From the NCBI GenBank assembly GCA_021613535.1, contig CP075493.1, positions 10,912,001 through 10,976,000 of the forward strand: 64,000 bases of DNA, written 5' to 3'. Position 1 is the stretch's first letter, and each line of letters begins with the position of its first letter. This DNA comes from Adineta vaga. Its lineage: Eukaryota; Animalia; Rotifera. The notes beneath the pieces are model-generated. The model had not been told where the DNA came from and ran no database searches. It saw nothing but the letters and a program-made list of their open reading frames with translations. The translations under genes were made by a program, and so were the position numbers. This document shows positions 11,325 through 57,146 of the stretch, in pieces.

Positions 11325-12278
11325 TCAAGTTTCCAAGAAGATATCTTCAAGACTTGCTGACTTGGAAATTGTCTGATCTATTGGTGTCGGTATATTAAAA
11401 TCAGTTCCTATGTTAATGGGTATCATTAATTGTACGTTGGAGGATAGAGCATCACTTTTGACTGTAATTCTTAATTTATATATAACATTTGCGACAGCTG
11501 ATTTTTCGAATTCTAGACAAAATTGAAAAGTTGGAGCAAGTGGTCGATCAGGTATTGTCATATCGAATGAATGAACTATTTGTTCAACACTGGGAATATC
11601 TATTGCAGATATAATCTTCTTACAAACTAAATATTGACTTGTACTTCTACCAATTTCATAATATTGTATTAATGAAATAACGATTTGATCAATTAATACA
11701 CATTGAAAATTGTCAATTTCTATTATACCTTGAATACTTTCACCTGGAATAAATCCACATTTATTTAAATTTCCTTTAATAAGAATATCTTTTCGATTCT
11801 CAACACCGAATTGCACTGGAATGCAACAACTTCGTATCTTCGATAGATTGACGCGTGGAAATATGTCTAAACATTGTTTCGGTAGAATCTGAGGTTTGAA
11901 CGATCGTTGATCAATGAATCCTTGAAGATAATATCGCACATGTGGATAAGTTTCCACATCTCCAAGTGTTGATGGTGGATAATCATTAGGCAACTGTATC
12001 TGAAATGGCCATGCGTATTGATCTTGATTATACGTCAACATTTTTTCATTCGATTTTTGATAGAACAACACATAGTTTTGCTTTAGAAATAGAATATGTT
12101 GATATGTTCCTGTAAAATCACCCATTTCACCAATTAACTGCAAGCCAAGTTCATTTGCTCGTATGATTTCATCTTTCACATATAATTCAATTGTTCCCGA
12201 TACAAAATCTCCACCATAAAAGTACGAATCTTGTCTATCAATATTAATATTAATGAAAGTACTAGTTTCGTTCCCCAT
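11325..12278 (-). CDS. Alpha-arrestin (arrestin N and C domains)
   Basis: YGGDFVSGTIEL, YAWPFQIQLPNDYPPS, VRYYL, LNKCGFIPGESI, IPINIGT. Confidence 0.88.
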   Translation of the reverse strand: MGNETSTFININIDRQDSYFYGGDFVSGTIELYVKDEIIRANELGLQLIGEMGDFTGTYQHILFLKQNYVLFYQKSNEKMLTYNQDQYAWPFQIQLPNDYPPSTLGDVETYPHVRYYLQGFIDQRSFKPQILPKQCLDIFPRVNLSKIRSCCIPVQFGVENRKDILIKGNLNKCGFIPGESIQGIIEIDNFQCVLIDQIVISLIQYYEIGRSTSQYLVCKKIISAIDIPSVEQIVHSFDMTIPDRPLAPTFQFCLEFEKSAVANVIYKLRITVKSDALSSNVQLMIPINIGTDFNIPTPIDQTISKSASLEDIFLET

Positions 12279-14269: not shown

Positions 14270-15971
14270 TTAATATTGTTCAATAGTAAATTTTTGTACT
14301 CGATGGTTGTTATAATCAGTTATATACAGATTACCTAATTGATCCAATGCGATATCAATAGGATTATTTAATTGGTTTGCTTGATTACCTCTACCATTAC
14401 CACCAATAATAACCTCTCCTTTAGATGATCCTTCTCGCCAACGTACCACTCGACTATTGTCTGAATCAACAATATAAATTGTTTTCAATCGATCTATAAC
14501 AATTCCAAATGGTCGACTTAAATGTGTTAGATCAGCACCTGGATCAAGACTTCCAGCTACAACAAGACCTTCTTTCGCACCGAATGTCCATTTTGTTACA
14601 CGATTACCAACAGTATCAGATACATAAATCGAATGATCTTGGTCGATGAGAAAGAAATTTGGAGAATACAATTGTTTGAGTTCAGTTCCTGAATTGTTGC
14701 CATCAACGATAATGGTTCCATTCATTTCTCCTATTCGAAACCGTCGAATTGTACCAGTTCTTTTATTCGATACATAGAGAAAGCCATGTTTATCCATAGC
14801 TAATCCTTGACATTCAATATTTATTAAAATCATTTGTGCACCAACACCCGTTTGAATAAACCATCGCATCAATCGTCTATTACCAGAATCACAAATAATT
14901 AAACTTTCTTTCGATTTTTCAACAATAACATGTATTGGTCGATTCAACTGATCACTTCGATTTCCTGGACCATTTTCACCTGCTACAATACGATAATCTG
15001 TTTGATTAAATTTTTTCTCAATAACACGATGATTATTATCATCGACAACATAAACCGTATTTTCATCATCAATATCAATTGTTCCAGGATTTCGTAATTG
15101 ATTTAATCCATCACCTGGACCATGACCACCTAGAATAGTAATACCATTTTGTGACCATCGAGCATTGATTGTTATATCATTCATTGATCGAACTAAAAGG
15201 AATCGAATGATTTATATTTATCGGTCAAATAATTTTTTACCATAGTTGACTTTCGTAATCTTTTCAGCTGTCCTTTTCCAAGATGTCATAACTAATGGAA
15301 TTGTTATAATGGCTAGTACAAGAATGGTAACTAAAAGCCATTCTCGACAATTCATTGATGTACAAAATATTCTATTGATCAAAGAATGTTTAATATCTTC
15401 CTCTTTTACTGGTTGATCAATCGGTGGATTTGAGAGTGGAGATTTATCGATGATTTTCTTATGTTGGAATGTTGGTGTAACTACATCTTTTGTATTAGAA
15501 TCATATAAACCATCTGGAGTTCCTTGACAAAAAAAATAAGCTCCTGATGGCAAAAGGAATAGATGAATACAGACTAATAGCCACTCTGTCTTCTTCATAT
15601 TCTTTCCAAAGAATATCAGCCAACGAAAGACTTTGTGTATCGAATTGTTTTTGATTTTGTTGATATTCTAATACATAACAATTAGAAAAAAACATTCATA
15701 TTTTTAGAAACAAACCTTGAAGACGTTTTGCTGCATCAAAACAACGAATTTTTTGTAAAGCTTCAATAAGATAAATACAATCTTGATCATTAATAATCGC
15801 TTTATCAAATAAAGCTTGAAGAACACGAAGTGTTCCACCTAATGAAAGATCATCACGTAAATTTCGCGGTACATCATCACCTAAGACAAAATGAAGACGT
15901 TGTCGATCATTATCCGAAAGAAGATCGTGAATTTTAAGAAGTAATTCTCGAAATTCAAAGTGACCACTCAT
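14270..15971 (-). CDS. Death effector domain (DED) - transmembrane - NHL-repeat beta-propeller protein (4 exons)
   Basis: Introns 15715-15668, 15574-15523 and 15240-15193 splice four ORF pieces in frame. DED: FRELLLKIHDLLS..DRQRLHF...LFDKAII...YLIEALQKIRCFDAAKRL. TM: WLLVTILVLAIITIPLVM. NHL repeats: QL..P..I.ID...YV.D..NHRV. Confidence 0.85.
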
Positions 15972-23744: not shown

Positions 23745-25103
23745 TTAATATATATTCTGGAAATTTTCATTGATATCTCGTTTAAAAGCATTCAGAAATA
23801 TTTCTATCTTATCTTTTTCTAATCGAAAAGAAACTTCTGCTCCATTGCGATCTCTTGGTAACCATTTGTTTTCATACTTTTCTGGATTCAAACGAAATAC
23901 ACGTAAATATAGAGCACGTGATCCACATGTATAAAACCGACATTGATCTTTGTAACCAAAATCAACTAGATCAGCCCAATCATATCGAAAATTAGAATTA
24001 ATTGCAATTTCATTTGGAGTTAATTGTCGATTTGCACGTTTGCTACTTTTTGCATTATCTCTCATAAATCTATCAATAGTTGCTATGCCATTAGCAAGAA
24101 TTTTTGAATCACGTAATTGAAGAAGTGATCGACGTATGGTTTGTGCAATATTTAAAAATGAATATGGATCATCGAAATTATCGGATAACATCATAAATAA
24201 AGCATTCGATACTTCTCCTCGTGGAGCAATGGAATCATCCATACCACGATAATTCGCAACTGTAATCGTATGTAAAATACGACGTTCATCATTATCCTTG
24301 TAACAGTATTTATTCAATGTTAAAGTAATATATGCTATAAGTGCATCGTGTATAGTTACATTAGTTTTGCCAGTTAGTACTTTTAATTGAGTAAGTTGTT
24401 CACCGGAAAAATGGATATTTATTGGTTCATAATCTAATTCAAGATTATGAGATGTTTTCACGAATTCTTCGTTTGATTGTGCCGTAAGAAATTGTTTTGG
24501 TATTGGTAAAAACGATTGTTGAACTTCATGTTCTTGCCATAAACGTCGTTCAAATATAGGTAATGGTAATATTGGATCCATTTGTTGATAGAATCGTGAA
24601 AATGTATTTGAAAAACGTAGACATGCATCTGCATCACCTAATGCATGGTACCAACTTACACCTAATATCCATTCATTACTTTGAATAATATGTGTTAATT
24701 TTAAACGTACAAGTGGTTCATCAAATGAATTCGGTAATAATTTTGTTACGGGAACGAAATCAATAAATGTTTGAAATAGTTGATTATCAGCTTCTACAAT
24801 TACATTTGCATCAAAAGGCCATTCTATGAGATCATGATTGTCAGATACTGTGATTGGAATAGAATTATCACACATTTCAATAAAATAATGTTGATCATTT
24901 TCTAATAAAATTCGACCAGTAACTAACGGCCAAAGAGAGAGTGTTTGACCGAGTGCTTCTTTCAGTTGATCAATTTTTATTTCATCAGGATAAACATAAA
25001 CATTGTCAATACGTGCTGAAAGCCATAGATCCATACCAGCTAGTTCTATACGACGATTGTTACCTGTTGGTGTTGATGATGATATCATAAACGTTGATGC
25101 CAT
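23745..25103 (-). CDS. BAHD/transferase-family CoA-dependent acyltransferase, intronless
   Basis: LKEALGQTLSLWPLVTGR, catalytic HxxxD (HALGD) and DFG motif (VDFGY). Confidence 0.88.
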   Translation of the reverse strand: MASTFMISSSTPTGNNRRIELAGMDLWLSARIDNVYVYPDEIKIDQLKEALGQTLSLWPLVTGRILLENDQHYFIEMCDNSIPITVSDNHDLIEWPFDANVIVEADNQLFQTFIDFVPVTKLLPNSFDEPLVRLKLTHIIQSNEWILGVSWYHALGDADACLRFSNTFSRFYQQMDPILPLPIFERRLWQEHEVQQSFLPIPKQFLTAQSNEEFVKTSHNLELDYEPINIHFSGEQLTQLKVLTGKTNVTIHDALIAYITLTLNKYCYKDNDERRILHTITVANYRGMDDSIAPRGEVSNALFMMLSDNFDDPYSFLNIAQTIRRSLLQLRDSKILANGIATIDRFMRDNAKSSKRANRQLTPNEIAINSNFRYDWADLVDFGYKDQCRFYTCGSRALYLRVFRLNPEKYENKWLPRDRNGAEVSFRLEKDKIEIFLNAFKRDINENFQNIY

Positions 25104-32953: not shown

Positions 32954-33967
32954 ATGAATACCAGTAACGCCACTATAATGACAAATACAGCTGAGTCAAT
33001 ATCAATTTTCGCCACTTTTTATAGTTACTATTGCCTATCAGTAATAATATGTGGTACGATATTCAATCTCCTGACAATTGTTGTCTTCTGTCGATCTATA
33101 TTTCGAAACACTAAAGCTCGTCCAACGACTCATTATATGCGTGCAATAGCAGTGGTTGATTGCGTTGGACTATATGGATGGACTCTCGATGGTTATCTAT
33201 ATGCAACTCACGGATTTACACTTAATTACACGTACACGGTGGCATCATGTAAGTTTTTCTATTTTTTAAATTTCTGGACACTTCAAACTTCAGCATGGCT
33301 GCATGTTTTTGTTGCTTTTGATCGGTATTTATTTATGAGTCGAGTGCAGCCAACGACGTGGTTCAATCGGTCAAAAAGTGTCTTGATTGTTATTACTTGT
33401 ATCATGACAATCTTTTTAATTTCAAATTTTCCTCTTTTAATATTAGTTTGTTACAGAAATACTAGTGGGTATATTATTGCCGACTATCCCTTATATCCCA
33501 TGGTTTCCACATTCCAAAGCATACATTTATGGATTTATGACCTTATTCCAGCAGGATTTATTTTATCATTCAATTTTCTCTCAATCTATCATCTTTATAA
33601 ACTACGACGAACAACAATCATAACAAATTCGAAAATTCGTCATCGGCCAATTACAATCACTCTTATCATCAATGGTTTTCTCTGCGTGATTACACGAACA
33701 CCAGCTTCGCTTAACTATGCTTTTTTCTATCCTATTCTTTCAGCAAGTGAAAGGGGTAATTTCCTGATTAATGTATTTAATTTACTTCTATACACATCTC
33801 CTGTTCTGAATTTTCCAATTTATCTAACGACATCCAGAGAATTTCGTCATGAGTTGGTTCATTGCTTGAGAAGAAGAGCGACGGCAGCAGCAACTGTTAG
33901 AGACAAACCGGTACAAATTGTACAAATCAAAGTACGAAGCATACCGAACACACGTGATTTACAATGA
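32954..33967 (+). CDS. Class A (rhodopsin-like) GPCR, intronless
   Basis: Seven hydrophobic segments; GTIFN, CK, AFDRY, LNFPIY, FRHEL. Confidence 0.9.
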   Translation: MNTSNATIMTNTAESISIFATFYSYYCLSVIICGTIFNLLTIVVFCRSIFRNTKARPTTHYMRAIAVVDCVGLYGWTLDGYLYATHGFTLNYTYTVASCKFFYFLNFWTLQTSAWLHVFVAFDRYLFMSRVQPTTWFNRSKSVLIVITCIMTIFLISNFPLLILVCYRNTSGYIIADYPLYPMVSTFQSIHLWIYDLIPAGFILSFNFLSIYHLYKLRRTTIITNSKIRHRPITITLIINGFLCVITRTPASLNYAFFYPILSASERGNFLINVFNLLLYTSPVLNFPIYLTTSREFRHELVHCLRRRATAAATVRDKPVQIVQIKVRSIPNTRDLQ

Positions 33968-37642: not shown

Positions 37643-39535
37643 CTGTAATCGCAGAAAAAGTGCATTACGAACGTTTGTAACTAAATAAAACAAAGTATAA
37701 GCAAGAGAACACAAATGATTTATCGTTGCCACATAAGATTTTTTTTCAATGACGAATAATTCATCCTTTTGTTTACCTTAAATAAACTGCCATTCATCTT
37801 TCTACACTCTCAATCAACATAAAACGGTATGTAACTTATTCTTTTCTTGTTAAGAAAGAACAAAATGTGTATGGAAACATTGCAACGATATCGTATCAAA
37901 ATATATCAATACTTATTATTTATCGGCACAAGTTTAATTATCTTCCTCACGAGTGATAGATATCTTACTCACCAGTATTACATCGATAATGATCCGTCAT
38001 TTTCATCATTAGCATTCTGGGAAGATAATCGAACATTACAAACAGGACGACCGTTACCTGTACCAGTAATTACAAATGACAAAATCAATCTAACAAATTT
38101 CACATTAGTAATAGCTGCTTGCTGTCGAAATGTTGAAAAATATCTGCCTGGTTTTCAAAAGAATGTGTATGCTATTGGTTCTTTATTTCAACACTATCAT
38201 CTCTATTTGGGTGAATCTGATTCCCAAGATAATACATTGAAATTTATTCAAGATTGGGCAAACAATGATTCTAAACATGTTAGTATTTATACTGCAGGAA
38301 ATCAACGATTGCGTCTTTTACTACGTAAGTTGCTTTTCCATGTCAAAACTTTTATCTTGTAGATAAATTAATGTACACTCTTGATATTTCTGGTTCGTAG
38401 GTACTCAACGACTTGCTCATTGTCGAAATAATCTTCTTCAACGTGCTCGTACTGAAATGTCTTCATTTGATTATTATCTTGTTCTTGACGTCGATGTTAC
38501 ATCATCAGATACATTTTCAGTTAATAATTTTCTCTCAAATTTTAATTATCCATTATCATCATGGGCAGCGATGACGGCATCGCAATCAGATAGATATTAT
38601 GATATTTGGGCACTACGTACATCGCCAACAGTCACATTTGATTTTCTTGAACGTAGTCGACAAGTATCAATAGTTCCTATAGCTTGGGGATCAGTACTTA
38701 AAAACTTAATATCACGACATTTTAAAGGTATTCCACGTGATCATCCATTGATCGATGTGGAATCCGCGTTTGGAGGTGCAGCTATTTATTCAACTCGACA
38801 TTTAACTGACAAATGTGTGTATGATGGTTGGAGAAACTATGGATTATGGTTTTATCGAGAACAATGTGAACATGTTTCGTTCAATCTATGTATTAGAGAA
38901 AATGCAGGTGGAGGAAAATTTTTCATCAATCCACGATTTCGAGCTGCTTGAAAATGTTTTGTTTCAATAGTAGAAAAAACAACATACATCAATCAAACAG
39001 CGATTATCGTCTAATTCTGTTATATTTTTTTACTTTCATTTAAAATAACACACGTCAGTTTCTGTTTCACAATGTACATGCGCACACGCCACATTTTTTT
39101 GTTTACATCTACAGAAGGTTGCTGTATTAATTAACAATGGGATGTTGTAAATCATCGACTGCTGCAGTAACACCAACTGTTCAACCTTTATCGACGGAAG
39201 AATTCGATGAAAAAGATGATGCAAATTTGATGTACAGTCAATTATTCAAAGAACTCGTAGAGCAAATACCGGAGCATGATCGATTCAAAGTCATATCTTA
39301 TTGTCCTGATTTGTATACTAAAAGAAATCTATGGAATTTGATCTCTACCAAACCACAATTATTAGATCGCACAAATTTAATGAGAAGAAAAATTCAAGAT
39401 AAAAATCCCTTGTTTGCTTTGGGTCATCTTCTGTTAGAAATGCGTTCATACGATCGTGCAGAATATTTTTATTTAAAATCTCTTTCCCAACAAACGAATG
39501 ATTGGAAACGTTTATCCATTATATACAATAATTTA
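37643..39535 (+). repeat. Segmental duplication, copy 2
   Basis: Near-identical to 26108-28005. Confidence 0.95.
37865..38951 (+). CDS. Type II membrane GT-A glycosyltransferase (CAP59/CMT1-like motifs), copy 2
   Basis: Intron 38325-38400; only a few amino-acid differences from copy 1. Confidence 0.8.
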
Positions 39536-40067
39536 GCTAGAGTATATTATGAACAGGAAAAATATGATCAAGTTTTAAAATATTATCATAAAAATATGAA
39601 TCTTTTACAAAAGAATTTACCTGATGATGATCCAAATCTTAGTGTTGATTATAACAATATTGGTACTGTTTATAAAAAACAAAAAAGATTTGATTTAGCT
39701 TTACTATTCTTTCAACAAGCATTAAATCTTGGAATGAAAGCTAATCAACCCGACGAAAAATTAATTGCATTATTCTATAATAATATTGGTTTAGCTCACA
39801 ATGCTCAACAGAATTTTGCTCAAGGTCTTATTCATCATGAAAACTGTTTACAAATAAATCAAAGACTTCTACCAACTGCTCATCCATCAATTGGCATTAT
39901 CGCATCATAATTTAGCTATTTCTCTTTGTGAATTAGGTCGACTTAATGAAGCATTCGGTCATGCACAAGAAGCAGTTGCTATAACATCACAATCTTTAGC
40001 TGATGATCATCCACAACAAATTGCTCATGAAAATCTTCTAGATGAAATACAGAAAAGAATGCCATAA
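39137..40067 (+). pseudogene. N-acylated (MGCC) TPR protein copy 2, with a +1 frameshift near the 3' end
   Basis: Kinesin-light-chain-like TPRs (YNNLARVY, YNNIGTVY, YNNIGLAH). An extra G at 39893-39894 interrupts HPSI|ALSHHNLAISL...DDHP...KRMP*. It could be a sequencing error. Confidence 0.75.
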
Positions 40068-45071: not shown

Positions 45072-48000
45072 TTATGCGATTGAATTCTGCATGTTTCCTT
45101 CATCGTCAATGAATGACTCACGTTGTAATTGCTGATATACAATAGAAATATTAATGAGAATATGAGATGGTATTTGATGTAGTTTTAAAATATCCGATCC
45201 GATAATAGTATTGATACAGGATTGTAAATTATCATACTCTTCGATTAATTCTTCTTTGCCTAGAGTCGAATATTTTCGAATGCTTGTAGTTAGTTTGGCC
45301 ATAGCTTCCGGTGTTTTTAAAGGACCAATTGATTTACCTTGTGCACGCTGTGTCAGTTCGATGGTAATGATGTTTGCTTGTGAATCATCTTTCCGTGAAT
45401 TATAATAATCGATAAGTTCAATTACGGACAATGTTTTGAGATCAACATTATTAAGAATTGTTGATTGTACCACGAACGTCTTCTCTTTGATGCTTGATTC
45501 ATGTTGCGTCTGTAGATTTATTTTATCTTCAATATCGTCTCTATTCTTGTATGTTTCAGAAGCGATCTTCGTTTTTGTTTCTTTATTTTTCAACTGTTTT
45601 GCTGCTTTTTTCGTATGAATAGATCGAATCACGTCGAGAACATCGTCTTCAGCCTGACAACTTGGTTCTGATGGTAATGCAGACGTACTGATAGAAGACT
45701 TTGATGCTGAATTTGTAGAATGATTGTTCGACAGCTCGGTCGTATTCGAATTATCAGCAGTATCCACAATAGTCATCTTCGATAGAAGTTTCTTCGAACG
45801 ATCCGGATTGTTTGCTATTCTTTGACAAAGATCATTTAAAGTACGAGTCAACTCAATGGATTGCTTTTTTGCTTCAATATTTCTTAACATACTCCCTTCA
45901 GTTTCAATCTGATGGATCAAAACATACAGCTCTTGAGCAAGGTCAAATCTTGTGCAAAACTGATTCAATTTTGAACAAAGCTGTGTAATATCTTCAGTCT
46001 CTTGTTTTAAGGCATTTTCAAGAAGATTTTTCGCATCTTCTTTCGAAATAATTCTCTTCTCATGGAAATTTTTCTCAGTTAAGGTTTGTTCATATTTTGT
46101 TTTAATATCATGGAGAACATCTTGTATCTTTTTCTTTCCTCTCTGAATCGTTTTTCTTGCATGATAGTGGTTCGTATACGAGCAATGACCAACACATTGA
46201 AGACAATATCCATTATGAATGGCCCAACATTGATAGAAGATTTGATCACCAATTGTCGTACTTTCATCTAATTGACAATTCTCATGACATATGTGATTAC
46301 ATTGCCGACAGAGAGTATTATTAAACGGAACATCAACAAGTTCGATTGTATCGATTTCTCGTTCTCGTGTGTAATCGCGATAAATAGTAAGATCATTGTC
46401 GCATTGTTTGGCAAGATTTTCCCATATGTTAATTTCATCTTGTAGTTTTTGAATTTGACTAATTTCTAAACGAACATTATGTAAGAGTGTCTTGATTTCA
46501 TTTCGAATATTCTTCATCATTTTAAATGCCTGAACAGATTTTGTTTGGAAAGTGTCAATAATGTTAATCATATTTTTAATGACAATCATCGACGTGTCGA
46601 ATTCAGATTGAATAGCTTTGAATGCAACCGGTGTCCAATAAGATGGATCCTGTGAGAAAGCTGAATTCTGCATATAATATGGATAGACATTACCACTCAG
46701 TTCGAGAGCATCAAGATTAAAATTTACTGTATAGCGTGTAGCGTTGGTTAGAACGACAATCACATTATTCATGATAATATCTGGCAAATTTCCACGAAGT
46801 TGACTTAGTACATGTCGTAAATTGATGGTGAGACGACTGACAGCACCATTAACGACAATCATGACGGCATTGAGCCCACCCAAGTTTTCCACCGCATTGA
46901 TTATTTTCGTAATGTTTTTGTCATCTTGTTGTGTACCTCGAGTATCAGATAGACCTGGTGTATCAATAAATAGATAGCGTTTTGAACCAACAGAAAACAA
47001 ATACTGATGACAATCGTCGGTTTTCGAATGCATCGTGTTCTGAAGATCATTTTCACAATGACTGAAGTTTTCCGTTACAGTTAGATGAAATTTAGAAGGA
47101 ATGGCTACACGAAGATTTTTCAAGGTTCCATTATAAAAATAATTGGTTAAATAGTTAATAAATGTTGATTTTCCGGATCCTGTTTCACCAATTATCAGAA
47201 CTTTGCCTATGTCACTTATATCAGTAACTTCTTGCGCGTCTTTCATTGAATATTTCTCGGATGTTGATGATAAATTCGACTCAGACGTCGATTCATTGGC
47301 AAAACTATCCTGCACTTTTTCATTATCGGCCGTCATTGTTAAATTTGTTTCGCCAATATTCTTCATATGTTTAGTGACTGTCATATTTACTATAATATCG
47401 TCTGAGGATTGCTTGTTAATAATACTCAATGATAAAAAGCCTTTCTGGAAAGAATCTCCATCATTATATAGTTTTGCACACATATCTTTCAAATTACCAA
47501 TTAATATATTCGTCTTCTGTTTAGTCTGAGTACTTTTTAGTGTTGCAGGTATGTTGTTTATTTGATCGGTAAAGACGTTCAATTCTTCACTCAGATCGAA
47601 ATCGGCACACATATACTTTAATTTCAGACATAGTTGTAGAATCTCTTTGGTATTTTGTTCTAAAGCATCATCAAGAATACAAATTGCATCTTCTTTCGTT
47701 AGAATTGTCTTTTCAGGAGATTTTAATGTACACTTGATTGTTATATCTTTGAGAAGTTCTTGTATAGATTTTTTACTTTGCTTAATTGTTTTCTTAGCAT
47801 AATAATGTTCACTATAGGGACATTTTCCAACACACTGACGACAGTGGCCATTTTTAATGACCCAACATTGTTCAATAATTTGATCACCAATAATAGTCAT
47901 CTCATCCGACTTACAATTTTCATGGCATGCTTCGTTACATTTTTGACACAGCGTACTGTAAGAAGATGTATTAATAATAGTTATTACATCTATCACGTAG

Positions 48001-49154
48001 CTTTTCATAAGATCTTCGTACGTTCCGAAGCTAATATCAGAATCATTCATTTGGATTTCACATAGATTTATCTGGTCTTGTATGCATAGTATTAGTTCCA
48101 TTTCGACACGTATGCTGTGCAATAATACTTTAAGTTGATTCCAAACTGGTCTCAGTTGTGCTCTTGTTTCTTCTGTTTCCGACGATAGTCTACCGCAGTG
48201 AACTGTTTGATTTACCAATAAGACATCAATGAAAAATTCTCGCATTTCATTATGATCGAGAATATTTAATCGATAAAAGAACTCTGTTTTCGAAATGTTA
48301 GTATTGTCTTTCTCATCATTACCATTCTTGTTGTCTTGTTTTAATTGTTCGGCAGATTCGCATCGTTGATTTTTCGCTGAAGAGTTGAAATCATTGGTCA
48401 TTCTATTAAGAAGATCGGTTAAATTACCATATAGCTTATCAAATTGTCTCTTTTCTTCGATGCAACTTAGCATGCTTTCGATGAATTTCAGCTGAACGAT
48501 CGGTATATTCGGTTCTTGATTCTGATCGAATTCTGCAGAAATATAATTTAATTTCATACACAGTTGTAGAATCTCTCTGGTATTTTGTTCTAAAGCATCA
48601 TCAAGAATACAAATTGCATCTTCTTTCGTTAGAATTGTCTTTTCAGGAGATTTTAATGTATACTTGGTTGTTATATCTTTGAGAAGTTCTTTTATAGATT
48701 TTTTACTTTGCTTAATTGTTTTCTTAGCATAATAATGATCACTAATGTGACATTTTCCAACACACTGATTACAGTGGCCATTTTTAATGACCCAACATTG
48801 TTCAATAATTTGATCACCAATAATAGTTATCTCATCGGAATTACAATTTTCATGGCATGCTTCATTACATTTTTGACACAGCGTACTATAAAAGGATGTA
48901 TCGATAAGTTTCTTTATACACATCTGATCATTGCTTATAAAGTCTATATACGTTTTATAGTCTGTAGAGGAGTCTTTTACCTGACGTATCCACTCCTCAA
49001 ATTTATTCTGCATGTCTTGAATATGATCAAGTTCAAGATGAGCATTATGTATGAGTAATTTTAACTTGTTGCGTATTGATATTAGTTTTAATGATGTTTC
49101 TGATTCTGTCAGTACACCATCGTCATTTTCATTTTCAGTGGAATTTATATTCAT
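45072..49154 (-). CDS. AIG1/septin-like P-loop GTPase paralog 1 (1360 aa): two N-terminal Cys/His coiled-coil modules, GTPase, a third module, and a helical C-terminal domain
   Basis: GETGSGKST, SKT, DTPG, VLTN, MQNSAF. Three copies of TLCxxCxxxCHxxC...C...CxxCxxxC...HY. No introns in the CDS. Confidence 0.88.
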   Translation of the reverse strand: MNINSTENENDDGVLTESETSLKLISIRNKLKLLIHNAHLELDHIQDMQNKFEEWIRQVKDSSTDYKTYIDFISNDQMCIKKLIDTSFYSTLCQKCNEACHENCNSDEITIIGDQIIEQCWVIKNGHCNQCVGKCHISDHYYAKKTIKQSKKSIKELLKDITTKYTLKSPEKTILTKEDAICILDDALEQNTREILQLCMKLNYISAEFDQNQEPNIPIVQLKFIESMLSCIEEKRQFDKLYGNLTDLLNRMTNDFNSSAKNQRCESAEQLKQDNKNGNDEKDNTNISKTEFFYRLNILDHNEMREFFIDVLLVNQTVHCGRLSSETEETRAQLRPVWNQLKVLLHSIRVEMELILCIQDQINLCEIQMNDSDISFGTYEDLMKSYVIDVITIINTSSYSTLCQKCNEACHENCKSDEMTIIGDQIIEQCWVIKNGHCRQCVGKCPYSEHYYAKKTIKQSKKSIQELLKDITIKCTLKSPEKTILTKEDAICILDDALEQNTKEILQLCLKLKYMCADFDLSEELNVFTDQINNIPATLKSTQTKQKTNILIGNLKDMCAKLYNDGDSFQKGFLSLSIINKQSSDDIIVNMTVTKHMKNIGETNLTMTADNEKVQDSFANESTSESNLSSTSEKYSMKDAQEVTDISDIGKVLIIGETGSGKSTFINYLTNYFYNGTLKNLRVAIPSKFHLTVTENFSHCENDLQNTMHSKTDDCHQYLFSVGSKRYLFIDTPGLSDTRGTQQDDKNITKIINAVENLGGLNAVMIVVNGAVSRLTINLRHVLSQLRGNLPDIIMNNVIVVLTNATRYTVNFNLDALELSGNVYPYYMQNSAFSQDPSYWTPVAFKAIQSEFDTSMIVIKNMINIIDTFQTKSVQAFKMMKNIRNEIKTLLHNVRLEISQIQKLQDEINIWENLAKQCDNDLTIYRDYTREREIDTIELVDVPFNNTLCRQCNHICHENCQLDESTTIGDQIFYQCWAIHNGYCLQCVGHCSYTNHYHARKTIQRGKKKIQDVLHDIKTKYEQTLTEKNFHEKRIISKEDAKNLLENALKQETEDITQLCSKLNQFCTRFDLAQELYVLIHQIETEGSMLRNIEAKKQSIELTRTLNDLCQRIANNPDRSKKLLSKMTIVDTADNSNTTELSNNHSTNSASKSSISTSALPSEPSCQAEDDVLDVIRSIHTKKAAKQLKNKETKTKIASETYKNRDDIEDKINLQTQHESSIKEKTFVVQSTILNNVDLKTLSVIELIDYYNSRKDDSQANIITIELTQRAQGKSIGPLKTPEAMAKLTTSIRKYSTLGKEELIEEYDNLQSCINTIIGSDILKLHQIPSHILINISIVYQQLQRESFIDDEGNMQNSIA
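47632..48900. repeat. Intragenic ~340-bp direct repeat (47632-47970 and 48562-48900)
   Basis: Near-identical DNA offset by 930 bp, encoding the duplicated Cys/His module. Confidence 0.9.
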
Positions 49155-50149
49155 TGGAACAACAGTGTGAATATTCTAGAATTTATAGTGTTAATCTAAA
49201 ATGAATAAAATTGAATGAGGAATTTATGACAATAAAAGAAAATCCTTAAAAAGTTAGTATACCGAGCAAGAAATGAAGTTTCATACTCGCTATAGTTATG
49301 TTCGCCTGTTTCATCATGCATAAAATTGTCATCTAAAGCAGAAACGTGTTAAACAATAACAGGTAAATGACTGCATGAGGCATAGAGATAAATTTTGAAA
49401 TTCACATACAGAACCGCATTCTTTTGAAAAGATGTATGTGCATGTGAAAGGAATATGATACGTGATCAAAACCATCTTTAACTAATAATTTGCACAGTAC
49501 TGAAATTCGTGTAACATAAAAGATCTTTCTCGATAGAAGACGTAACTTCAACCAATCGCGTTGTCTGTTTCTTACTATAGTATGCAGTGGTATGTTTATG
49601 CATTACTGTTTTCTTCGAGTGTTTCTAATATTTTACTCGCATATTGGTTTAGGATCGAATCTACAAGTCAAATGCTAAACATAATACTCGAAAACAATTT
49701 CAAAACATTGTTGTCATCGTCAGTATTACCTTTTCTCATAACTGAAGCAATGTTTGTCAGATGAATAATAAAATCTTGATTGTAATAGATTGTGAGTAGA
49801 GAAGCATGTGTCATACGTTTTCCAACATCATATAACAACAAATGTTTCAAGTGCATATATGCTGCGCAAACTTTTCTATCTCTGTATACTTATTCGTTCT
49901 TATCGAGTTTTTTTCGGAGAAAAACGACTTCTTAGCGTCATTTTTGCGAACATAATTTTATGTTGGTAAATTGCTAGCGAAAATGATGACATAAAACATA
50001 CGTTTCAATATTTTAACATTTGACTTATATTTATCAACCCGTGCATGATAAATCATCAGTAACTTCTATTTTACCAACATGGATTATTTATATAGAACGA
50101 AGAGAAAAAATTTTTCATTGTAACTTCATATCGAACATCTGAAACTCAG

Positions 50150-50400
50150 GTAACGTTATGATGACAGATGTATCTAGTAGATACCAATACTGTTGTTCTC
50201 ATGATTGCCAGCAGAATCGATAACGGTATCATTTGTGAATCAATATGTTCCAGTTGCCAACTCTTCACGATTAGAGTTCGTGTATATATTTGAAAAATTC
50301 CCCTGTATCTTCGATGAGATCGAAAACGATCCGACAACTTTTCAGTAACCGCCATTGAGAATATGAATAGTATACGCACTTTCATTCCATTGCGTCAAAT
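50150..50400 (-). pseudogene. Possible NHL-repeat gene remnant
   Basis: TQWNESAYTI..LNG...GN..IY...VIDSAGNH with several stops. Confidence 0.25.
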
Positions 50401-50744
50401 CTGCCTTGTTAAATTGATTTTTTAAGATTTCCGCTAACAGCATGTATTACTAGCAAATAAGAATCTTAATCAGATTAGGAGGATCATGTATATTATAATA
50501 GTCATTGATCACATTAAACATTTTCTCATCTAGTAATACCATATATTTCACTTAAGGATAACTAAATCAACACTAATTTTGATAGTATTTATGATGGTAT
50601 AGCCTATTTGATTAAAAAATATAGGAAGATAAAGTAGGAGCATCGTATTTTTTCTCGAGTATTTCATTTTTTGAAAATGTTTAATCAACAAAGATAGTAA
50701 TGTATATATCTTTTATTCTTGAATTTTTTTCTAGCGTTTCGAAT

Positions 50745-52934
50745 ATGTCCAAGCATGAAATTAATGTTGTTCTCATTGGCGAAACTGGCAGTGGTAAGTT
50801 TTATCTGGTCTCAATTTATTACATGTGAAAGTACTTCTTTAGGAAAATCGACATTTATTAACTATCTAGTCAATTATTTTTACAGAGGTTCACTGAACTC
50901 CTTACGTGTTGCCATTCCAACAGCTTATATTAGAGCGAATATGAACTACATTTCGCAAGAAAATGCGGTCGCAGATCGAACTAAAAGTAAAACAGTAGAA
51001 TGTCAACGTTATTCCTTCGAAATACAAGGACAACGGTTTAATTTTATTGACACGCCTGGTACCAATGATACGAATGGTCGTGTTCAAGATGTTCAAAATA
51101 TTGAAAAAGTCTTAGCTTATATTCAAAGTCTCAACACAATCACTGCCATTGTACTTATTCTGAATGGTACTGTTGCGCGTGCAACTATCAACATTAAAAT
51201 GTTGTTAACATATATCGTGACTATCTTCCAAATGCTATCTATTCAAATATCATTATTGTACTGACCAATTGCGAGGCACATACTGTGAATTTTAGTCCCA
51301 AGGATATTGATCTACCAGAAAAATGTCCGGTATATCATATGCAAAATTCTGCGTTCGCATCTGATCCTCGCACATGGTCACATAATAAGGTTGCCTTCTT
51401 GCAACGACAGTTTGATACATCAATAGAAACGTTGAATCAGTTTTTGGAAAAATTATTGTCACTTCAACCAACATCGACTAAATTATTTGAAAATATGAAT
51501 GATGCTCGAAATAAAATTAAGCAACAGCTGTATCGGGTACGAATGACTATTTTAGATTTACAAACTTTAGAAGATGAACTAGCAGCTTCTGAAGTTTCAG
51601 GAGAAATTCATGCGACGAATGCGAGCAAATTTCAAAAGTTTTTAATGGAACGCACAATCAACCAAACCAAGCAGATAAACACATCTTATTACAATACAAG
51701 ATGTTTTGTATGTGATATAGAATGTCATCGAAATTGTAAACTAAACGAAGCTCCTCTGCCAGGATCAACAGAATTGCGACATTGTTCTGTAATGAACTCG
51801 CTTGGATATTGCCGTCATTGTCCAAATCGATGTCATGCTAGTAAACATTTTCATGCTCGATACAGTGTAGAAATAGTGAAAACTCCTGCGAAAGAATTCT
51901 TGGACAGCATGCAGCAACGATATTTCGAAGCAAGACAAGAACAGCAACAAGCTGATTTGAAATGTGATGATCTTGAAAAGACAAAGCGACTTTTAGAACG
52001 TGAACTTGGACAACAATATAAGGAGATTAAGGAAGAAATTAGTAGTTTAAAAGAGATGTGTAATGAATTGAATATCACTGAAATTCTCTTTCAATTTATT
52101 GAATTATTGCAAAAAGATAATATGCATCTAAAATCACCTTCAGTTATTCGCAAATCAGGTGCATTTATAGACGATCTCAAGCAATTGTGTGCCAACTCAG
52201 ACCAATCAACTTCTCAGAAATCAAACAAATGGTCAGCATCATCATTTTCACAGAAGAATACATCTAAGTTAATGATGAATACGAGTTCAGCATATAGTGC
52301 AGATTTATCAAACAGTTATATGTCAACAGTTGCTCTTCTGCCACACGGTCAGACCACGGATATTTTTCATTCTTCAGGATCAGTCTATCCGCAACTGCCA
52401 TATCGATGTTCACTCGAAAACAATAAGAAAAGTACTCATAACGAGTATATCAAAGCACCAGAAGATATGTGTCATGGCGAAAAGAATGAAAATGATGTAG
52501 AACAAACGTTCCATAGCATAGGAATGGACGCCGAAGAAAAAATACCACAACAGCAGATTATGCCTGATGGTCATTGTATCATGGATTCTAAAGCAAAAAA
52601 AGAACATCTCTCTATGCAATCATTTGGCAATCTAATTCATCTTTTGAACAACGCGACAAATGAATTAGATATGAAGGAGATTAAGGATGAATTGCAGCGT
52701 CGATGTTTTGGAGAATCCGTCGGATTTCTAACTTTCCACGAACAAATTATGTTGTGTGAACAATATGCAAAACATCAAAATATACCCTTTCCGTATCTAA
52801 TGCGCTTGAGTGTTCAGCTGATTGATGAAATAGAAAAGCTGACTGGCGATGATCCTATTAAAATGAATTGTTTATCGTCCGATAAACGATTACAATTAGC
52901 TGCAATCAATCTTCTTATCAAAAATAGAACTTAA
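50745..52934 (+). CDS. AIG1/septin-like GTPase paralog 2; one apparent frameshift (pseudogene or sequencing error)
   Basis: MSKHEINVVLIGETGSG|KSTFINYL with intron 50794-50842; a short upstream exon from 50677 is possible. DTPG present. One A is missing in the run at 51196-51199; restoring it gives NIKNVVNIYRDYLPNAIYSNIIIVLTN, matching the paralogs. Confidence 0.8.
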
Positions 52935-53816
52935 ACAAAAATAGAAACGTGTTCAAAACACTACAACAACACAAAGACTGATTCGTCAATGAAAATATTC
53001 TTTATAAATCTCTCTTCGTAGTAGAGAATCTGCCTGTGACATTTCACACTCAGACACTAGAACATATAGAAATGATGTTCTTTTACTGATTATCAAAATG
53101 TCATAGCAGATAATCTATTACGCGAGTGGTTTAATTGATTTCTTTTCGAGATTTTAGTTGTTGATATATACGAGTAATTTACAATATACAAACTTCACAT
53201 CTTTATTATCGAAACTATAATAAACACGATTTTTTTTCTTTTTTTTCTAGATCAATTAAATACGTTGATATAATTGTTTTCTTCGAACGTTTGAACGAAA
53301 TTATTTGTACGTATATCTTATTATACTTCATTCCTATTTATACGAAACTGTCAGTTTAATTACTGTAAATTAAAAAGAAAACAAGTTTACAAACTTATAG
53401 TATTTTATTGGAAAATCTCACCAGTGTAAAACTACAAAGTTGAGTTCAAGTTTTAAGTATTACATGTATGAATGCTTTTGAGGTAAAATACAATTAAAGC
53501 AACTCAAATTTCGCGTTGCATCTTTTCGTTCTTTTCCATTAGGAAGCGTGAGAGTAAGGGCAGACACGTTTACATGTATAGTGGATTGAAGAAGATGATA
53601 CTATTTAGTTCACACTGCGGGAGTTAATCAGTAATAATAGTTCCGAAAATTGCTCAACGAAAGTATAAGTGCTGATAAGATCATTTTTAGCTAGTTCGGG
53701 ATCATTTGATAAAATGAAATGTTTTTTTTTTAGTCTATAATAGAAACAGAGAAACACCATTTACGTTAATCAAAGTATTAACAATATCTACTGGAAATCA
53801 ATTTAAATATTGTTCG

Positions 53817-56800
53817 ATGAATGCAATGCATGGATTGATTATTATGCAACAGCAATGGGGTCGATCGGGACAACCATCACGTCAGGAGAATCTGAACACT
53901 AGCAAAATGATAAAAGTTCTTTTGATCGGTGAAACAGGATCTGGAAAATCGACTTTTATCAACTATTTAACAAACTACTTGAAACATGGTACACTACATA
54001 ACTTGAAAATTGCCATTCCTTCAGTTTTCCATCCAGATGTCACTGAAGAATTTGATCATCATGAACATGTTCTCCATGACCAAACACAATCAAAAACGGA
54101 TTCTTGTTGTCAATATATGTTTGACGATGGAACGAATCAATATCTATTTATTGATACACCAGGCTTATCTGATACACGTGGTCATGAACAAGACAAGATT
54201 AATCTTCAAAAAATTATTGATGCTGCCGAGAATCTCAATGGACTCACGGCTGTAATTATTGTCGTGAATGGAGCTGTCTCTCGGCTAACAATCAATTTAC
54301 AAAATGTTATTGCTCAATTACGCGGAAATCTACCTGACACTGTTATGGATAATGTTATTGTTGTTTTGACAAATACGTCACGATATTCTACTAATTTCAC
54401 CTTAGAAGCACTTAAACTTAATGGAAATGTCTATCCCTATTATATGCAAAATTCAGCCTTTACAACCGATCCAAAGAAATGGACCACAACAGTCATAGAA
54501 TCATTACAATATGATTGGAATCAGTCGATGAATGAGATCAAAGCAATGTTAGCAACGCTTAATACATTCAAGACGAAATCTGTAGCTGCCTTCACGAATA
54601 TGAAAGATATTCGAAATACGATCAAACAACTGATGCATGCTGCACGTATTGAAGTTGTAAGAATTCAAAAGATGCAAGATGAGATTGCGATGTTCGAAGC
54701 CGGTTTAAAACAAGCTAATGCAGACACAGTTACTTATAAAGACTATAAAAAAGAACGTGTCATTGACAATATTGAATTTATTGATACTCGTCATCATAGT
54801 ACATTGTGTCAAAGCTGCAATTATGTTTGTCATGAAAACTGTGGTCTCAATGAAGCTACAGTTGTGGGTCATCAGATCTTTCAACATTGTATGGCAATAA
54901 AAGATGGCAATTGTACGAAATGTCCTCGAAACTGTTCGTATACAGATCATTATCATGCAAAGAAAACAGTGAAAATTACCAAGAAAAAAGTGGAAGATAT
55001 TATAGCCGACATAAAAAGTCGATATGAAGCTGCATCAGACGATTCAGCTAATTATCAAAAGAAGATTAAAAGTACCGCAGATGCCAAGCGACTACTGGAA
55101 AATGCACTGAAACAGAAAAACGAAGAAATCATAGCAAAATGCAATGAACTACGCAGAATATGTTCTGGATTCAACTTAGCGACAGAACTGCATGCTCTAA
55201 TTGCTCAGCTCGAAATTGAATCGGCGATGTTACGTAATATAGAGACAAAACAACAAGCGGAGACATTTATTCGAAGTCTAAAACAACTTTGTACAGAAAT
55301 CGAAAGAGATCAAAGCGAACAACATGCAAGAAGATCTCAAAATCCAAAAATGACTGTCATTAATACTGAACCAACTATCGTAAGTCAAACGGAACGATCA
55401 TTTCAATCCACGATAGTACCTAGTACTTCCAGTTCAACTCAACAAACTTCAAACATAAATTCACAATCACATGTCAGCGAAGAAATTCTAGCGAAACTTC
55501 GAGAAATGGCTAGAAATCCTTCAAGAACAAGATCAAAACAAAGGGTGAGAAACATATCAACTAATGATACTGATTCAACAAGCGATGAAAATGAGCAGAA
55601 TGAAATCGACAGCAGCGAAGATGAAACAACAAAATCGCGTGAACCTCGATCGTCGTCTGGAAGATCAACAAGAATGGAACCTTGTGTAGAGGAATTCAAA
55701 CAATTGTCGACTAGTGAATTGGTCACACGTTATCGAGTCTGTGATGATCATCGGACAAGTAATTTTATTTTTCATGAACTTACTCAACGATCCTACGGTA
55801 AATCAATGGCACCGCTTACAGAGCCCTCTGCAATAGCTGCTTTTACGACTTTTGTACAAAAGCATTGTTCATTAGATCACAATGCACTAAAATACAAATA
55901 TGAGCAGCTTAAGGAACAAATAACAGCTATTACCGAACCTGATATTCTTCAAATTGAGAAAGTTCCCTTATCCTTAATGTGCGAAATAGCTGCTGTATAT
56001 GAATTACTAAAAACTTCTTCTGATACTGGAAGAATGACCACCCCTAATGCCTCATTTCCATCAAGGCTAACATCACCAGGTGATTACCAACCATGGCCTT
56101 CCTATGCTTACTTACAACAACAACCACCAATCCACCATCGTGATTCACCATTTGTGGCTCCTATTCCGCTGTATCGATACCAATCACCATATGAATATAC
56201 TCATCTCTCTGCTAGAGTACATTATCCAGAGGATGCTGCATCTGAATACATATCTCGATTATCACTACATCCGCATATATCTCCAAATGCGAGTTTCAAC
56301 TACCAACCCAGTCATAATGTACCAAAACCATACGATCATCCTTCACTTAATAAATCTACACATAATATGCCAACAGATGGTTCAGAAAACCAGCATATAC
56401 AACCTTTCATGCATGGTCATTCTGAGCATTTCAGACACCACAATTATGGTAATCCTGCATATCATCCGACTTTAAATTCAAGTGTGAGAAATGCTCCATC
56501 TTCGACTTCAAATCCGTATCACTTCTTACAAGATCAACACCGATATGCTAATGAAAATTTAATATCATCAAATCCAACACATCATCCATTAGCGTCATCA
56601 TCGATTGCATCATCAAATCATCTGTCGGGAGAATGCGACATAATGCGTGTTACTTCGCCATTCAGACCTGTAAGATCTGATGTGTATCGCTCTAGCGCTC
56701 GCTCACCAACACAACGACCATTATCATCTTCCTCTGGTTTTTCAGAATCCAGTACTCATGCAGGTAGTGTCGTTAACCTTCCTTTCGAATTAACCATTGA

Positions 56801-57146
56801 AGATCTACGTAAATATACGGATGCAAAATTATTGTCAGCTCTTGACGATGCAAGCGAAAAAAAGAATCGATCACATCAGCATATTATCTATACGGAACTT
56901 GAACAACGTTGTTACGGCGATCATCCTCTATTAATCCAAGAAAAACGTGCGCTTTTCGATGAGAAATGTAACAAATTTCGTGAATTTTCAATGGCTGACC
57001 TTCGCAGGTTCCAATTAAAAATGCAACAAGATATTTATAACCATCTTATAAATGGTAATGCTACAAATTTAACTAATGTACCATCTGAGCTAATCATTGA
57101 AATCGCTGCAGTAAACTATTGCATTAGAATGTTCAATGATCAATGA
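53817..57146 (+). CDS. AIG1/septin-like GTPase paralog 3 (1109 aa) with two copies of the helical C-terminal domain separated by a P/H/S/Y-rich linker
   Basis: GETGSGKST, SKT, DTPG, VLTN, MQNSAF and the Cys/His module. Intronless. Confidence 0.9.
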   Translation: MNAMHGLIIMQQQWGRSGQPSRQENLNTSKMIKVLLIGETGSGKSTFINYLTNYLKHGTLHNLKIAIPSVFHPDVTEEFDHHEHVLHDQTQSKTDSCCQYMFDDGTNQYLFIDTPGLSDTRGHEQDKINLQKIIDAAENLNGLTAVIIVVNGAVSRLTINLQNVIAQLRGNLPDTVMDNVIVVLTNTSRYSTNFTLEALKLNGNVYPYYMQNSAFTTDPKKWTTTVIESLQYDWNQSMNEIKAMLATLNTFKTKSVAAFTNMKDIRNTIKQLMHAARIEVVRIQKMQDEIAMFEAGLKQANADTVTYKDYKKERVIDNIEFIDTRHHSTLCQSCNYVCHENCGLNEATVVGHQIFQHCMAIKDGNCTKCPRNCSYTDHYHAKKTVKITKKKVEDIIADIKSRYEAASDDSANYQKKIKSTADAKRLLENALKQKNEEIIAKCNELRRICSGFNLATELHALIAQLEIESAMLRNIETKQQAETFIRSLKQLCTEIERDQSEQHARRSQNPKMTVINTEPTIVSQTERSFQSTIVPSTSSSTQQTSNINSQSHVSEEILAKLREMARNPSRTRSKQRVRNISTNDTDSTSDENEQNEIDSSEDETTKSREPRSSSGRSTRMEPCVEEFKQLSTSELVTRYRVCDDHRTSNFIFHELTQRSYGKSMAPLTEPSAIAAFTTFVQKHCSLDHNALKYKYEQLKEQITAITEPDILQIEKVPLSLMCEIAAVYELLKTSSDTGRMTTPNASFPSRLTSPGDYQPWPSYAYLQQQPPIHHRDSPFVAPIPLYRYQSPYEYTHLSARVHYPEDAASEYISRLSLHPHISPNASFNYQPSHNVPKPYDHPSLNKSTHNMPTDGSENQHIQPFMHGHSEHFRHHNYGNPAYHPTLNSSVRNAPSSTSNPYHFLQDQHRYANENLISSNPTHHPLASSSIASSNHLSGECDIMRVTSPFRPVRSDVYRSSARSPTQRPLSSSSGFSESSTHAGSVVNLPFELTIEDLRKYTDAKLLSALDDASEKKNRSHQHIIYTELEQRCYGDHPLLIQEKRALFDEKCNKFREFSMADLRRFQLKMQQDIYNHLINGNATNLTNVPSELIIEIAAVNYCIRMFNDQ

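Follow-up and report, generated by a model that had tools for sequence, protein, structure and literature searches.

In plants and vertebrates, GTPases of the GIMAP/AIG1 group have links to immunity and to the survival of cells; within this group GIMAP7 and GIMAP2 hetero-dimerise with unequal catalytic roles. The chloroplast import GTPases Toc33, Toc34 and Toc159, membrane proteins of plant plastids, have paraseptin G domains that dimerise and operate in hetero-pairs, and septins, IRG and dynamin-like/GBP proteins are oligomerising TRAFAC GTPases, several of which act in cell-autonomous immunity. To our knowledge, little is understood of how the GIMAP/AIG1 proteins act, and hardly any work has been devoted to their relatives in invertebrates. 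Here we describe three adjacent genes for such GTPases, P1, P2 and P3, in the bdelloid rotifer Adineta vaga. They lie in a 64,000-nt stretch of contig CP075493.1, referred to below as the window (32% GC), from a genome assembly of 100.8 Mb in six pieces. A sequence-only reading of the window had proposed that the three genes are paralogs with shuffled modules whose products form a hetero-oligomeric system for defence or membrane remodelling. We conclude, with moderate confidence, that P1–P3 are AIG1/GIMAP-like GTPases of an uncharacterised family with a proposed dimer-switch mechanism, in which P2 and P3, members of two clades designated B and A, respectively, form an ancient B–A unit and P1 is a derived gene.

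In structure and profile searches the P1–P3 G domain matched GIMAP7 and GIMAP2 (PDB 3zjc and 2xtp) best, and P1–P3 resemble the GIMAP/AIG1 proteins also in the succession of a G domain and helices and in belonging to clustered, lineage-expanded gene families. However, identity to GIMAP proteins is only ∼16%, the AIG1 score stays below the cut-off and the G4 motif is non-canonical, whereas the stalk is much longer, carries a Cys/His beta-finger and is followed by an apparently private tail, and there is no membrane anchor. Toc33 gave the top score in VIA-align, but the Toc GTPases have neither the stalk-finger nor the tail. Septins and IRG proteins could be aligned with P1–P3 in the P-loop only, and the G domain of P1–P3 (∼210 amino acids, aa) is small compared with those of the dynamin-like/GBP proteins.

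A large, previously uncharacterised and patchily distributed family of eukaryotic GTPases has been reported as an 'AIG1-like' expansion in the nematode Halicephalobus mephisto, whose genes were not induced by heat and for which transfer from fungi was suspected (Weinstein et al., 2019; PMC6872716). The likeness of that expansion to the P1–P3 family is one of description; the paper deals with the G domain only and describes no Cys/His finger, gene pair or tail. A protein of Halicephalobus sp. (P0033) is a full-length relative, with 39% identity over 90% of a query consisting of G domain and stalk; the nematode genes sit with a tardigrade/mosquito clade, not with the bdelloid one. The B–A gene pair, the tail and the conversion of a finger cassette in P1 appear to be three previously undescribed details within the AIG1/GIMAP-like GTPases. 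The locus provides an entry into a DUF-labelled family of hundreds of members, with a confidently predicted architecture, conserved predicted metal ligands and a putatively private tail.

Domain architecture of P1, P2 and P3

P1 is divergent from the tandem genes P2 and P3, and this layout, the paralogy of the three genes and the shuffling of their modules all agree with the sequence-only reading (Table 1). Pairwise BLAST of the pieces showed the same numbers of Cys/His fingers and tails that the sequence-only reading had counted: three and one in P1, one and one in P2, and one and two in P3. Residues 641–1355 of P1 align to residues 23–740 of P3 with 46% identity (G domain, 67%; stalk, 48%; tail, 37%), and the G domain of P2 is 43–46% identical to those of P1 and P3. 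The P1 tail matched the first tail of P3 with an E-value of 3e-21; the second P3 tail was weak in pairwise BLAST (E 0.003) and was detected by the tail profile at E 1.6e-49. The joined model of P2, with an X at a break in its frame (see below), was used for the alignment and the tree only, whereas database searches used the P2 pieces.

The assignment of the G domain to the TRAFAC class was borne out by Pfam, Foldseek, VIA-align and profile searches, with AIG1/GIMAP/Toc as the nearest group. All three proteins carry the G1 (GETGSGKS), G2 (SKT) and G3 (DTPG) motifs, and in an alignment of 59 family sequences these three motifs are canonical and hardly vary: G1 reads GETGSGKST and the residues T94, D113 and G116 are invariant. 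In Pfam, MMR_HSR1 scored above its cut-off and AIG1 (PF04548) missed its cut-off of 27 bits (P3, 26.9; P2 fragment, 21.6; P1 not listed); precomputed PF04548 matches exist on many relatives. The AlphaFold2 (AF2) model of P3 residues 1–520, built from 59 homologs, has a mean predicted local distance difference test score (pLDDT) of 86.5 and a predicted template-modelling score (pTM) of 0.82. Its best Foldseek matches were GIMAP7 (E 1.7e-7), followed by GIMAP2 and Toc34/33, and VIA-align gave Z-scores of 15.1 for Toc33 and 14.1 for GIMAP7, ∼1 Z above generic TRAFAC GTPases. The family profile searched against PDB sequences had GIMAP7 as its best match (E 1.3e-5).

Membership in other GTPase groups found little in its favour. 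The septin profile (PF00735) reached 15.9 bits on the P2 fragment against a cut-off of 26.2. In the family profile, the matches to septins were limited to profile positions up to ∼41, that is, to the P-loop region, and the IRG matches likewise covered the P-loop only. Dynamin_N, for which the cut-off is 27 bits, matched the P2 fragment only, with 26.4 bits, and dynamin/GBP proteins would be expected to have a G domain of ∼300 aa. PADLOC and NCBIfam yielded P-loop-level matches only (LeoA, 16.8 bits; mad8). No hydrophobic or membrane segment was found in P1–P3 outside the core of the G domain. Switch II distinguishes the two clades: clade A keeps an Arg (DTPGLSDTRG, as in Amoebozoa), whereas clade B has Gly or Asn in its place (DTGG or DTNG).

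In the AF2 model of P3, the G domain is followed by two stretches of stalk helices (residues 224–300 and 392–508) that flank the finger, a long two-stranded beta-ribbon with strands at residues 315–331 and 378–391. The Cys/His motif that had been noticed in the stalk is real and is conserved across the 59 family members. Its candidate ligands at the tip of the finger are C331, C/H334, C338, H339, C342, C358, C366, C369, C373, H378 and H380 (P3 numbering), each position being kept in 43–55 of the 59 sequences; they would most likely make up two or three Zn sites. The stalk of the family probably corresponds to Pfam DUF8206 (PF26633), a label that comes not from P1–P3 themselves but from relatives with precomputed matches (P0013, P0014, P0047, P0100 and P0119) and from the Atlas neighbours of a stalk-only query. 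We found no mention of DUF8206 in the literature. Searches with the finger alone (residues 300–420) or the first tail alone (residues 615–745) returned near relatives only, a result that reflects the word-index limit of the search and not an absence of more distant ones.

The tail is a domain of ∼115 aa with seven helices, predicted with a pLDDT of 91.7 for the first tail of P3. It had no Pfam match at E-values up to 10; its best match in the PDB by Foldseek had an E-value of 0.8, the best Z-score in a wide VIA-align search was 7.7, to helical hairpins and within noise, and TM-scores against the Atlas were at most 0.42. A death-fold or another known adaptor domain, which we considered as candidates for the tail, was unsupported by all four of these searches. 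With the tail profile, relatives from bdelloids or from the environment showed between one and three tails and the named non-rotifer relatives none, and all 14 tail matches in the A. vaga genome fall inside genes of the P1–P3 family. The tail thus appears to be private to bdelloid rotifers and to have no known fold.

P1 differs from its paralogs by two additional modules of stalk and finger, M1 and M2, which precede the G domain; the module in the canonical place after the G domain is M3. The three modules match one another with E-values of 1e-68 to 1e-98. P1 is sister to P3 in the tree described below (SH-aLRT, the Shimodaira–Hasegawa-like approximate likelihood-ratio test, 92–96) and is probably a derived clade-A gene that gained two G-less stalk/finger modules at its N-terminus. 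The order M-M-G-M-T (M, stalk module; G, G domain; T, tail) appears to be old, because P0122, a relative of 1614 aa from another assembly, is collinear with P1 at 45% identity. Within P1, however, a tract of ∼400 nt that covers the Cys/His cassette and the next helix is 92–99% identical at the nucleotide level between M1 and M2, compared with 43–56% in the flanks, and in P0122 M1 and M2 are more similar to each other (58% identity) than to their positional counterparts in P1 (44–49%). Since the tract is far more alike than its flanks, and since M1 and M2 of P0122 are likewise more alike within the protein, the two finger cassettes undergo concerted evolution by gene conversion, with a recent homogenisation in P1. 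The locus is an example, from an asexual animal, of gene conversion at the level of a sub-domain cassette.

Distribution of the family and the B-then-A gene pair

An exhaustive search identified 263 cluster representatives of the family with E-values below 1e-30, a number that rises to 1491 if the limit is set at 1e-10. Named full-length relatives, which comprise both G domain and stalk and are 30–57% identical, occur in the bdelloids Adineta, Rotaria and Didymodactylos, in dictyostelids, Arcella, Pelomyxa and Phalansterium, and in tardigrades, the nematodes Auanema and Halicephalobus, the mosquitoes Aedes and Armigeres and the ciliate Blepharisma. The family is thus large but very patchy in its distribution. 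None of the named full-length relatives carries a functional name, and we found no one-to-one orthology to a housekeeping GTPase.

The A. vaga genome has ∼14 loci with a G domain plus stalk (designated here by chromosome and position). In a maximum-likelihood tree, clade A comprises P1, P3, C3:14.43, C5:16.48 and C4:4.98 (SH-aLRT 96–98) and clade B comprises P2, C3:14.428, C5:16.478 and C5:9.02 (SH-aLRT 100). Copy number and synteny, which the sequence-only reading had recommended checking, revealed a family that is expanded, clustered and fast-diverging, as is often the case for conflict-related GTPases. Two further loci, C1:13794065–13796771 and C3:4812296–4814864, hold head-to-head pairs of very divergent, tail-less members of ∼500–600 aa, which have the identical arrangement on the two chromosomes and are basal in the tree. 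At C2:10130898–10136717 (L031, L032) there are two tandem clade-A genes, both with in-frame stops or breaks, the second of which has the order G-M-T-T like P3. The idea that this locus is a decayed ohnologous copy of the window found no support, as the two have no flanking open reading frame (ORF) in common.

A further feature of the locus is the pairing of P2 and P3. Both types of genes are present at three A. vaga loci (on C1, C3 and C5), and in each of these a one-tail clade-B gene is followed by a clade-A gene on the same strand. The same B-then-A pair is found in Adineta ricciae (140 nt apart), in Rotaria sp. (260 nt apart) and, twice, in Didymodactylos carnosus, and in these species the B gene always has one tail and the A gene two or three. 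A clade-A gene lies downstream of 7/7 clade-B genes whose neighbour was examined; C5:9.02 seems to be a lone clade-B gene. The A gene of one Didymodactylos pair (L039) is collinear with P3 over residues 21–1104 (1119 alignment columns), so that the P2–P3 unit with its 1+2 pattern of tails appears to be older than the split of the bdelloid families. Because the side-by-side pair has been kept across the examined bdelloids, P2 and P3 probably work together, and the B–A unit names a specific pair in which hetero-dimerisation and unequal catalysis can be sought.

P1 is missing beside the A. ricciae pair, the upstream side of which is taken up by 7tm_1 genes. These are rhodopsin-type seven-transmembrane (7TM) genes (L034, 2042–3072 and 7195–8446), and the window has a 7tm_1 ORF at 32954–33967, likewise upstream of the pair. 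The 7TM genes may be a remnant of synteny, with P1 and other genes inserted in A. vaga. Directly upstream of one B-then-A pair of Didymodactylos carnosus there is a BIR+RING (IAP-like) gene (L037, 2768–5044).

Proposed mechanism and alternative explanations

By analogy with GIMAP2/GIMAP7 and Toc33/Toc159, the G domains of P1–P3 would dimerise across the nucleotide site on binding of a nucleoside triphosphate (NTP), as homo-dimers or as A–B hetero-dimers. The finger with its predicted metal would project from the stalk and offer a surface for binding, and the tails, held on disordered flexible linkers, might recruit partners or build higher-order assemblies. The switch-II Arg, kept in clade A and lost in clade B, would fit an asymmetric pair. 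The role of such a switch would most likely be conflict- or stress-related. A role in defence is plausible, given the expansion, clustering and fast divergence of the family, the 11:4 ratio of non-synonymous to synonymous changes among the listed allelic differences of P2 and the presence of caspase-like, NHL and BIR-RING genes nearby. Of the proposed hetero-oligomer, the coupling of P2 and P3 stands, on the strength of the conserved pair, but not the three-part complex: a fixed complex of this kind is unlikely because P1 is missing beside the A. ricciae pair. The proposed role at membranes likewise found no support, no hydrophobic segment lying outside the G-domain core, and no observation spoke for a tuning of target recognition by the number of fingers or tails. 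As to physical association, a complex prediction for the A. ricciae proteins (A, residues 84–575; B, residues 1–488) gave 0.40 compared with 0.00 for the best control, with runs agreeing in ≥52% of contacts and a partner pLDDT of ≥63, and was rated as weak support; we do not count it as proof that the proteins bind.

Several observations weigh against the interpretation of P1–P3 as GTPase switches built around a B–A pair. The G4 motif reads (L/F)-T-N-(C/A/T) and has no conserved Asp three positions on, so that guanine specificity is not assured. The finger had sub-threshold Fer4 matches, and a Fe-S cluster in place of Zn is possible. According to the tool's own counts, most weak passes in the complex prediction are wrong, and paralogs that associate as homo-dimers would pass this test just as hetero-dimers would. 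Orthologs from different genera are only 42–52% identical, so that paralogous copies of the unit may be among the 'pairs'. No RNA contigs covered positions 48600–54599 in two runs guessed to be RNA, which is no proof of silence. Finally, the reference allele of P2 may be broken for real. In the assembly its frame is off by one base at a run of four A (Table 1); in contigs of two independent DNA runs (X2 and X3, from 2013 and 2015), compared over the same 48600–54599 interval, there are five A at this site and the frame is intact, the extra A being placed behind 51195 in the sole contig over the site in each run. As ∼1% of the positions in these contigs deviate from the window, they may represent the other haplotype. 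This leaves two explanations of the break, an assembly error in a homopolymer or a defect confined to one allele, and at least one intact copy of P2 exists.

The suggestion that P1–P3 constitute a cell-autonomous immune system, a hetero-oligomer of all three that detects or attacks pathogens and whose specificity is set by the numbers of fingers and tails, is a tentative one and on balance doubtful. It would explain the GIMAP-like G domain, the expansion and clustering of the family in several lineages, the fast divergence outside the G domain seen between P1 and P3, the conserved gene pair and the weak pass in the complex test, and it would fit the caspase-like and NHL neighbours in the window and the BIR-RING gene beside one Didymodactylos pair. 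The allelic differences in P2, 11 non-synonymous and four synonymous in a partial list, also point this way, but a ratio of ∼3:1 is equally consistent with relaxed constraint. Furthermore, a study of fungal infection in bdelloids, with its supplements, names no such gene and contains only the Gene Ontology term 'GTPase activity'; the paper on the related expansion in Halicephalobus demonstrates no immune role for it (PMC6872716); P1 is absent beside the A. ricciae pair; and the two putative RNA runs had no contigs of the locus, a result that also counts against a constitutive function. A more elaborate scheme makes the B–A pair an asymmetric hetero-dimeric NTPase switch with the Arg supplied by A, in which the finger senses, the tails nucleate signalling and P1 serves as decoy or amplifier of an innate-immune sensor pair. 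We regard it as speculative and improbable; if true, such an asymmetric pair would be an undescribed type of animal innate-immune sensor.

Conservation can also be read in the opposite sense, with P1–P3 as a housekeeping scaffold, that is, a structural or trafficking factor, constitutive and switched by nucleotides, that serves micro-eukaryotes of limno-terrestrial habitats and has no part in conflict. The retention of architecture and gene pair since before the bdelloid family split, the strong conservation of G1–G3 and of the metal ligands from ciliates to animals and the presence of the family in many Amoebozoa would all suit such a factor, but its very patchy phyletic distribution, variable copy number, stop codons in some copies (C2:10.131–10.137 Mb) and low identity even between congeners make it quite unlikely. 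The same stop codons, the frame break in the P2 assembly and the missing RNA contigs could be taken as signs of a decaying cluster in which some or all of P1–P3 are pseudogenes. This is very improbable: unbroken ORFs of 1360 and 1109 codons in DNA of 32% GC would not be expected of decayed genes, the catalytic motifs and metal ligands are all intact, and so is the P2 frame in the two DNA runs. A separate question, compatible with any function, is the origin of the bdelloid genes, which could have come from Amoebozoa by horizontal transfer. In the tree, clades A and B together are sister to dictyostelids, Arcella, Pelomyxa and Phalansterium (SH-aLRT 97), whereas the genes of tardigrades, nematodes and mosquitoes fall into a clade of their own. 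However, an approximately unbiased (AU) test did not reject a tree in which all animal sequences group with one another (p 0.075), our tree has no root and comes from a quick search without fungal and chordate relatives, and the clade-B genes carry spliceosomal introns; transfer is accordingly an unlikely, though not negligible, explanation. None of these alternatives appears to us as probable as an AIG1/GIMAP-like dimer switch organised around the B–A unit.

Gene models and other features of the window

Table 1. Coordinates of P1, P2 and P3 and of their parts within the window.
Feature	Position	Strand	Description
P1 (I4U23_003542)	45072–49154	minus	one 1360-aa ORF, order M1-M2-G-M3-linker-tail; putative derived clade-A gene
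P1 tail domain	45075–45437	minus	BLAST, tail profile and genome tail search
P1 module M3	45765–46637	minus	canonical place after G domain; 48% identical to P3 module
P1 G domain	46635–47237	minus	MMR_HSR1 E 5.9e-7
P1 module M2	47355–48182	minus	second G-less stalk + hairpin module
Gene-conversion tract, M2 copy	47578–47980	minus	partner of M1 tract
P1 module M1	48285–49112	minus	stalk helices + Cys/His hairpin, without G domain; E 1e-98 vs M2, E 1e-68 vs M3
Gene-conversion tract, M1 copy	48508–48910	minus	Cys/His cassette + next helix
P2 (I4U23_003543)	50745–52934	plus	clade-B GTPase, G-M-linker-tail, two exons
P2 exon 1	50745–50793	plus	ATG to mid P-loop
P2 intron	50794–50842	plus	49 nt, GT..AG
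P2 exon 2	50843–52934	plus	stop at 52934
P2 frame break	51196–51199	plus	run of four A; frame off by one base in assembly
P2 tail domain	52575–52931	plus	BLAST, tail profile and genome tail search
P3	53817–57146	plus	one 1109-aa ORF, clade A, G-M-linker-T1-linker-T2
P3 G domain	53883–54536	plus	MMR_HSR1 E 4.9e-7; AIG1 just below cut-off (see text)
P3 stalk module	54534–55376	plus	long helices (residues 257–300 and 392–508) either side of finger (AF2 model)
P3 Cys8/His3-4 beta-hairpin finger	54759–54989	plus	residues 315–391, AF2 model
P3 tail domain 1	55674–56051	plus	AF2 model, seven helices
P3 low-complexity linker	56052–56768	plus	Ser/Pro/His/Tyr-rich
P3 tail domain 2	56769–57143	plus	tail profile and genome tail search

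The public models of two of these genes are corrected here. In I4U23_003543, an artificial intron spans the frame break of P2 and removes ∼26 residues, including the G4 motif, so that this region is lost to a bridged frameshift. In I4U23_003542, residues 59–81 of P1 (window 48912–48980), 23 conserved residues, have been excised as an intron; as these residues align without gaps to P0122, the continuous ORF is the better model of P1. The public model of P3 begins at Met31, and a database sequence, P0121, is 100% identical to P3.

The genuine intron of P2 interrupts the codons of the P-loop (GETGSG/KS). In an ORF-based alignment the first half of the P-loop is missing from several other clade-B ORFs (C3:14.428, C5:16.478, C5:9.02 and P0049 of A. 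ricciae) and from the clade-A ORF C5:16.48, and, since it is missing exactly where the P2 intron sits, we infer that the position of this intron is common to all of them.

Elsewhere in the window there are ORFs for a caspase-domain protein (3968–5527), an arrestin (11325–12278), an NHL-repeat protein (14270–15184) and a TPR_12 protein (39137–39910), and the minus strand has a 452-aa ORF (23745–25103) with a match to the Pfam family 'Transferase' (PF02458, E 3.9e-9).

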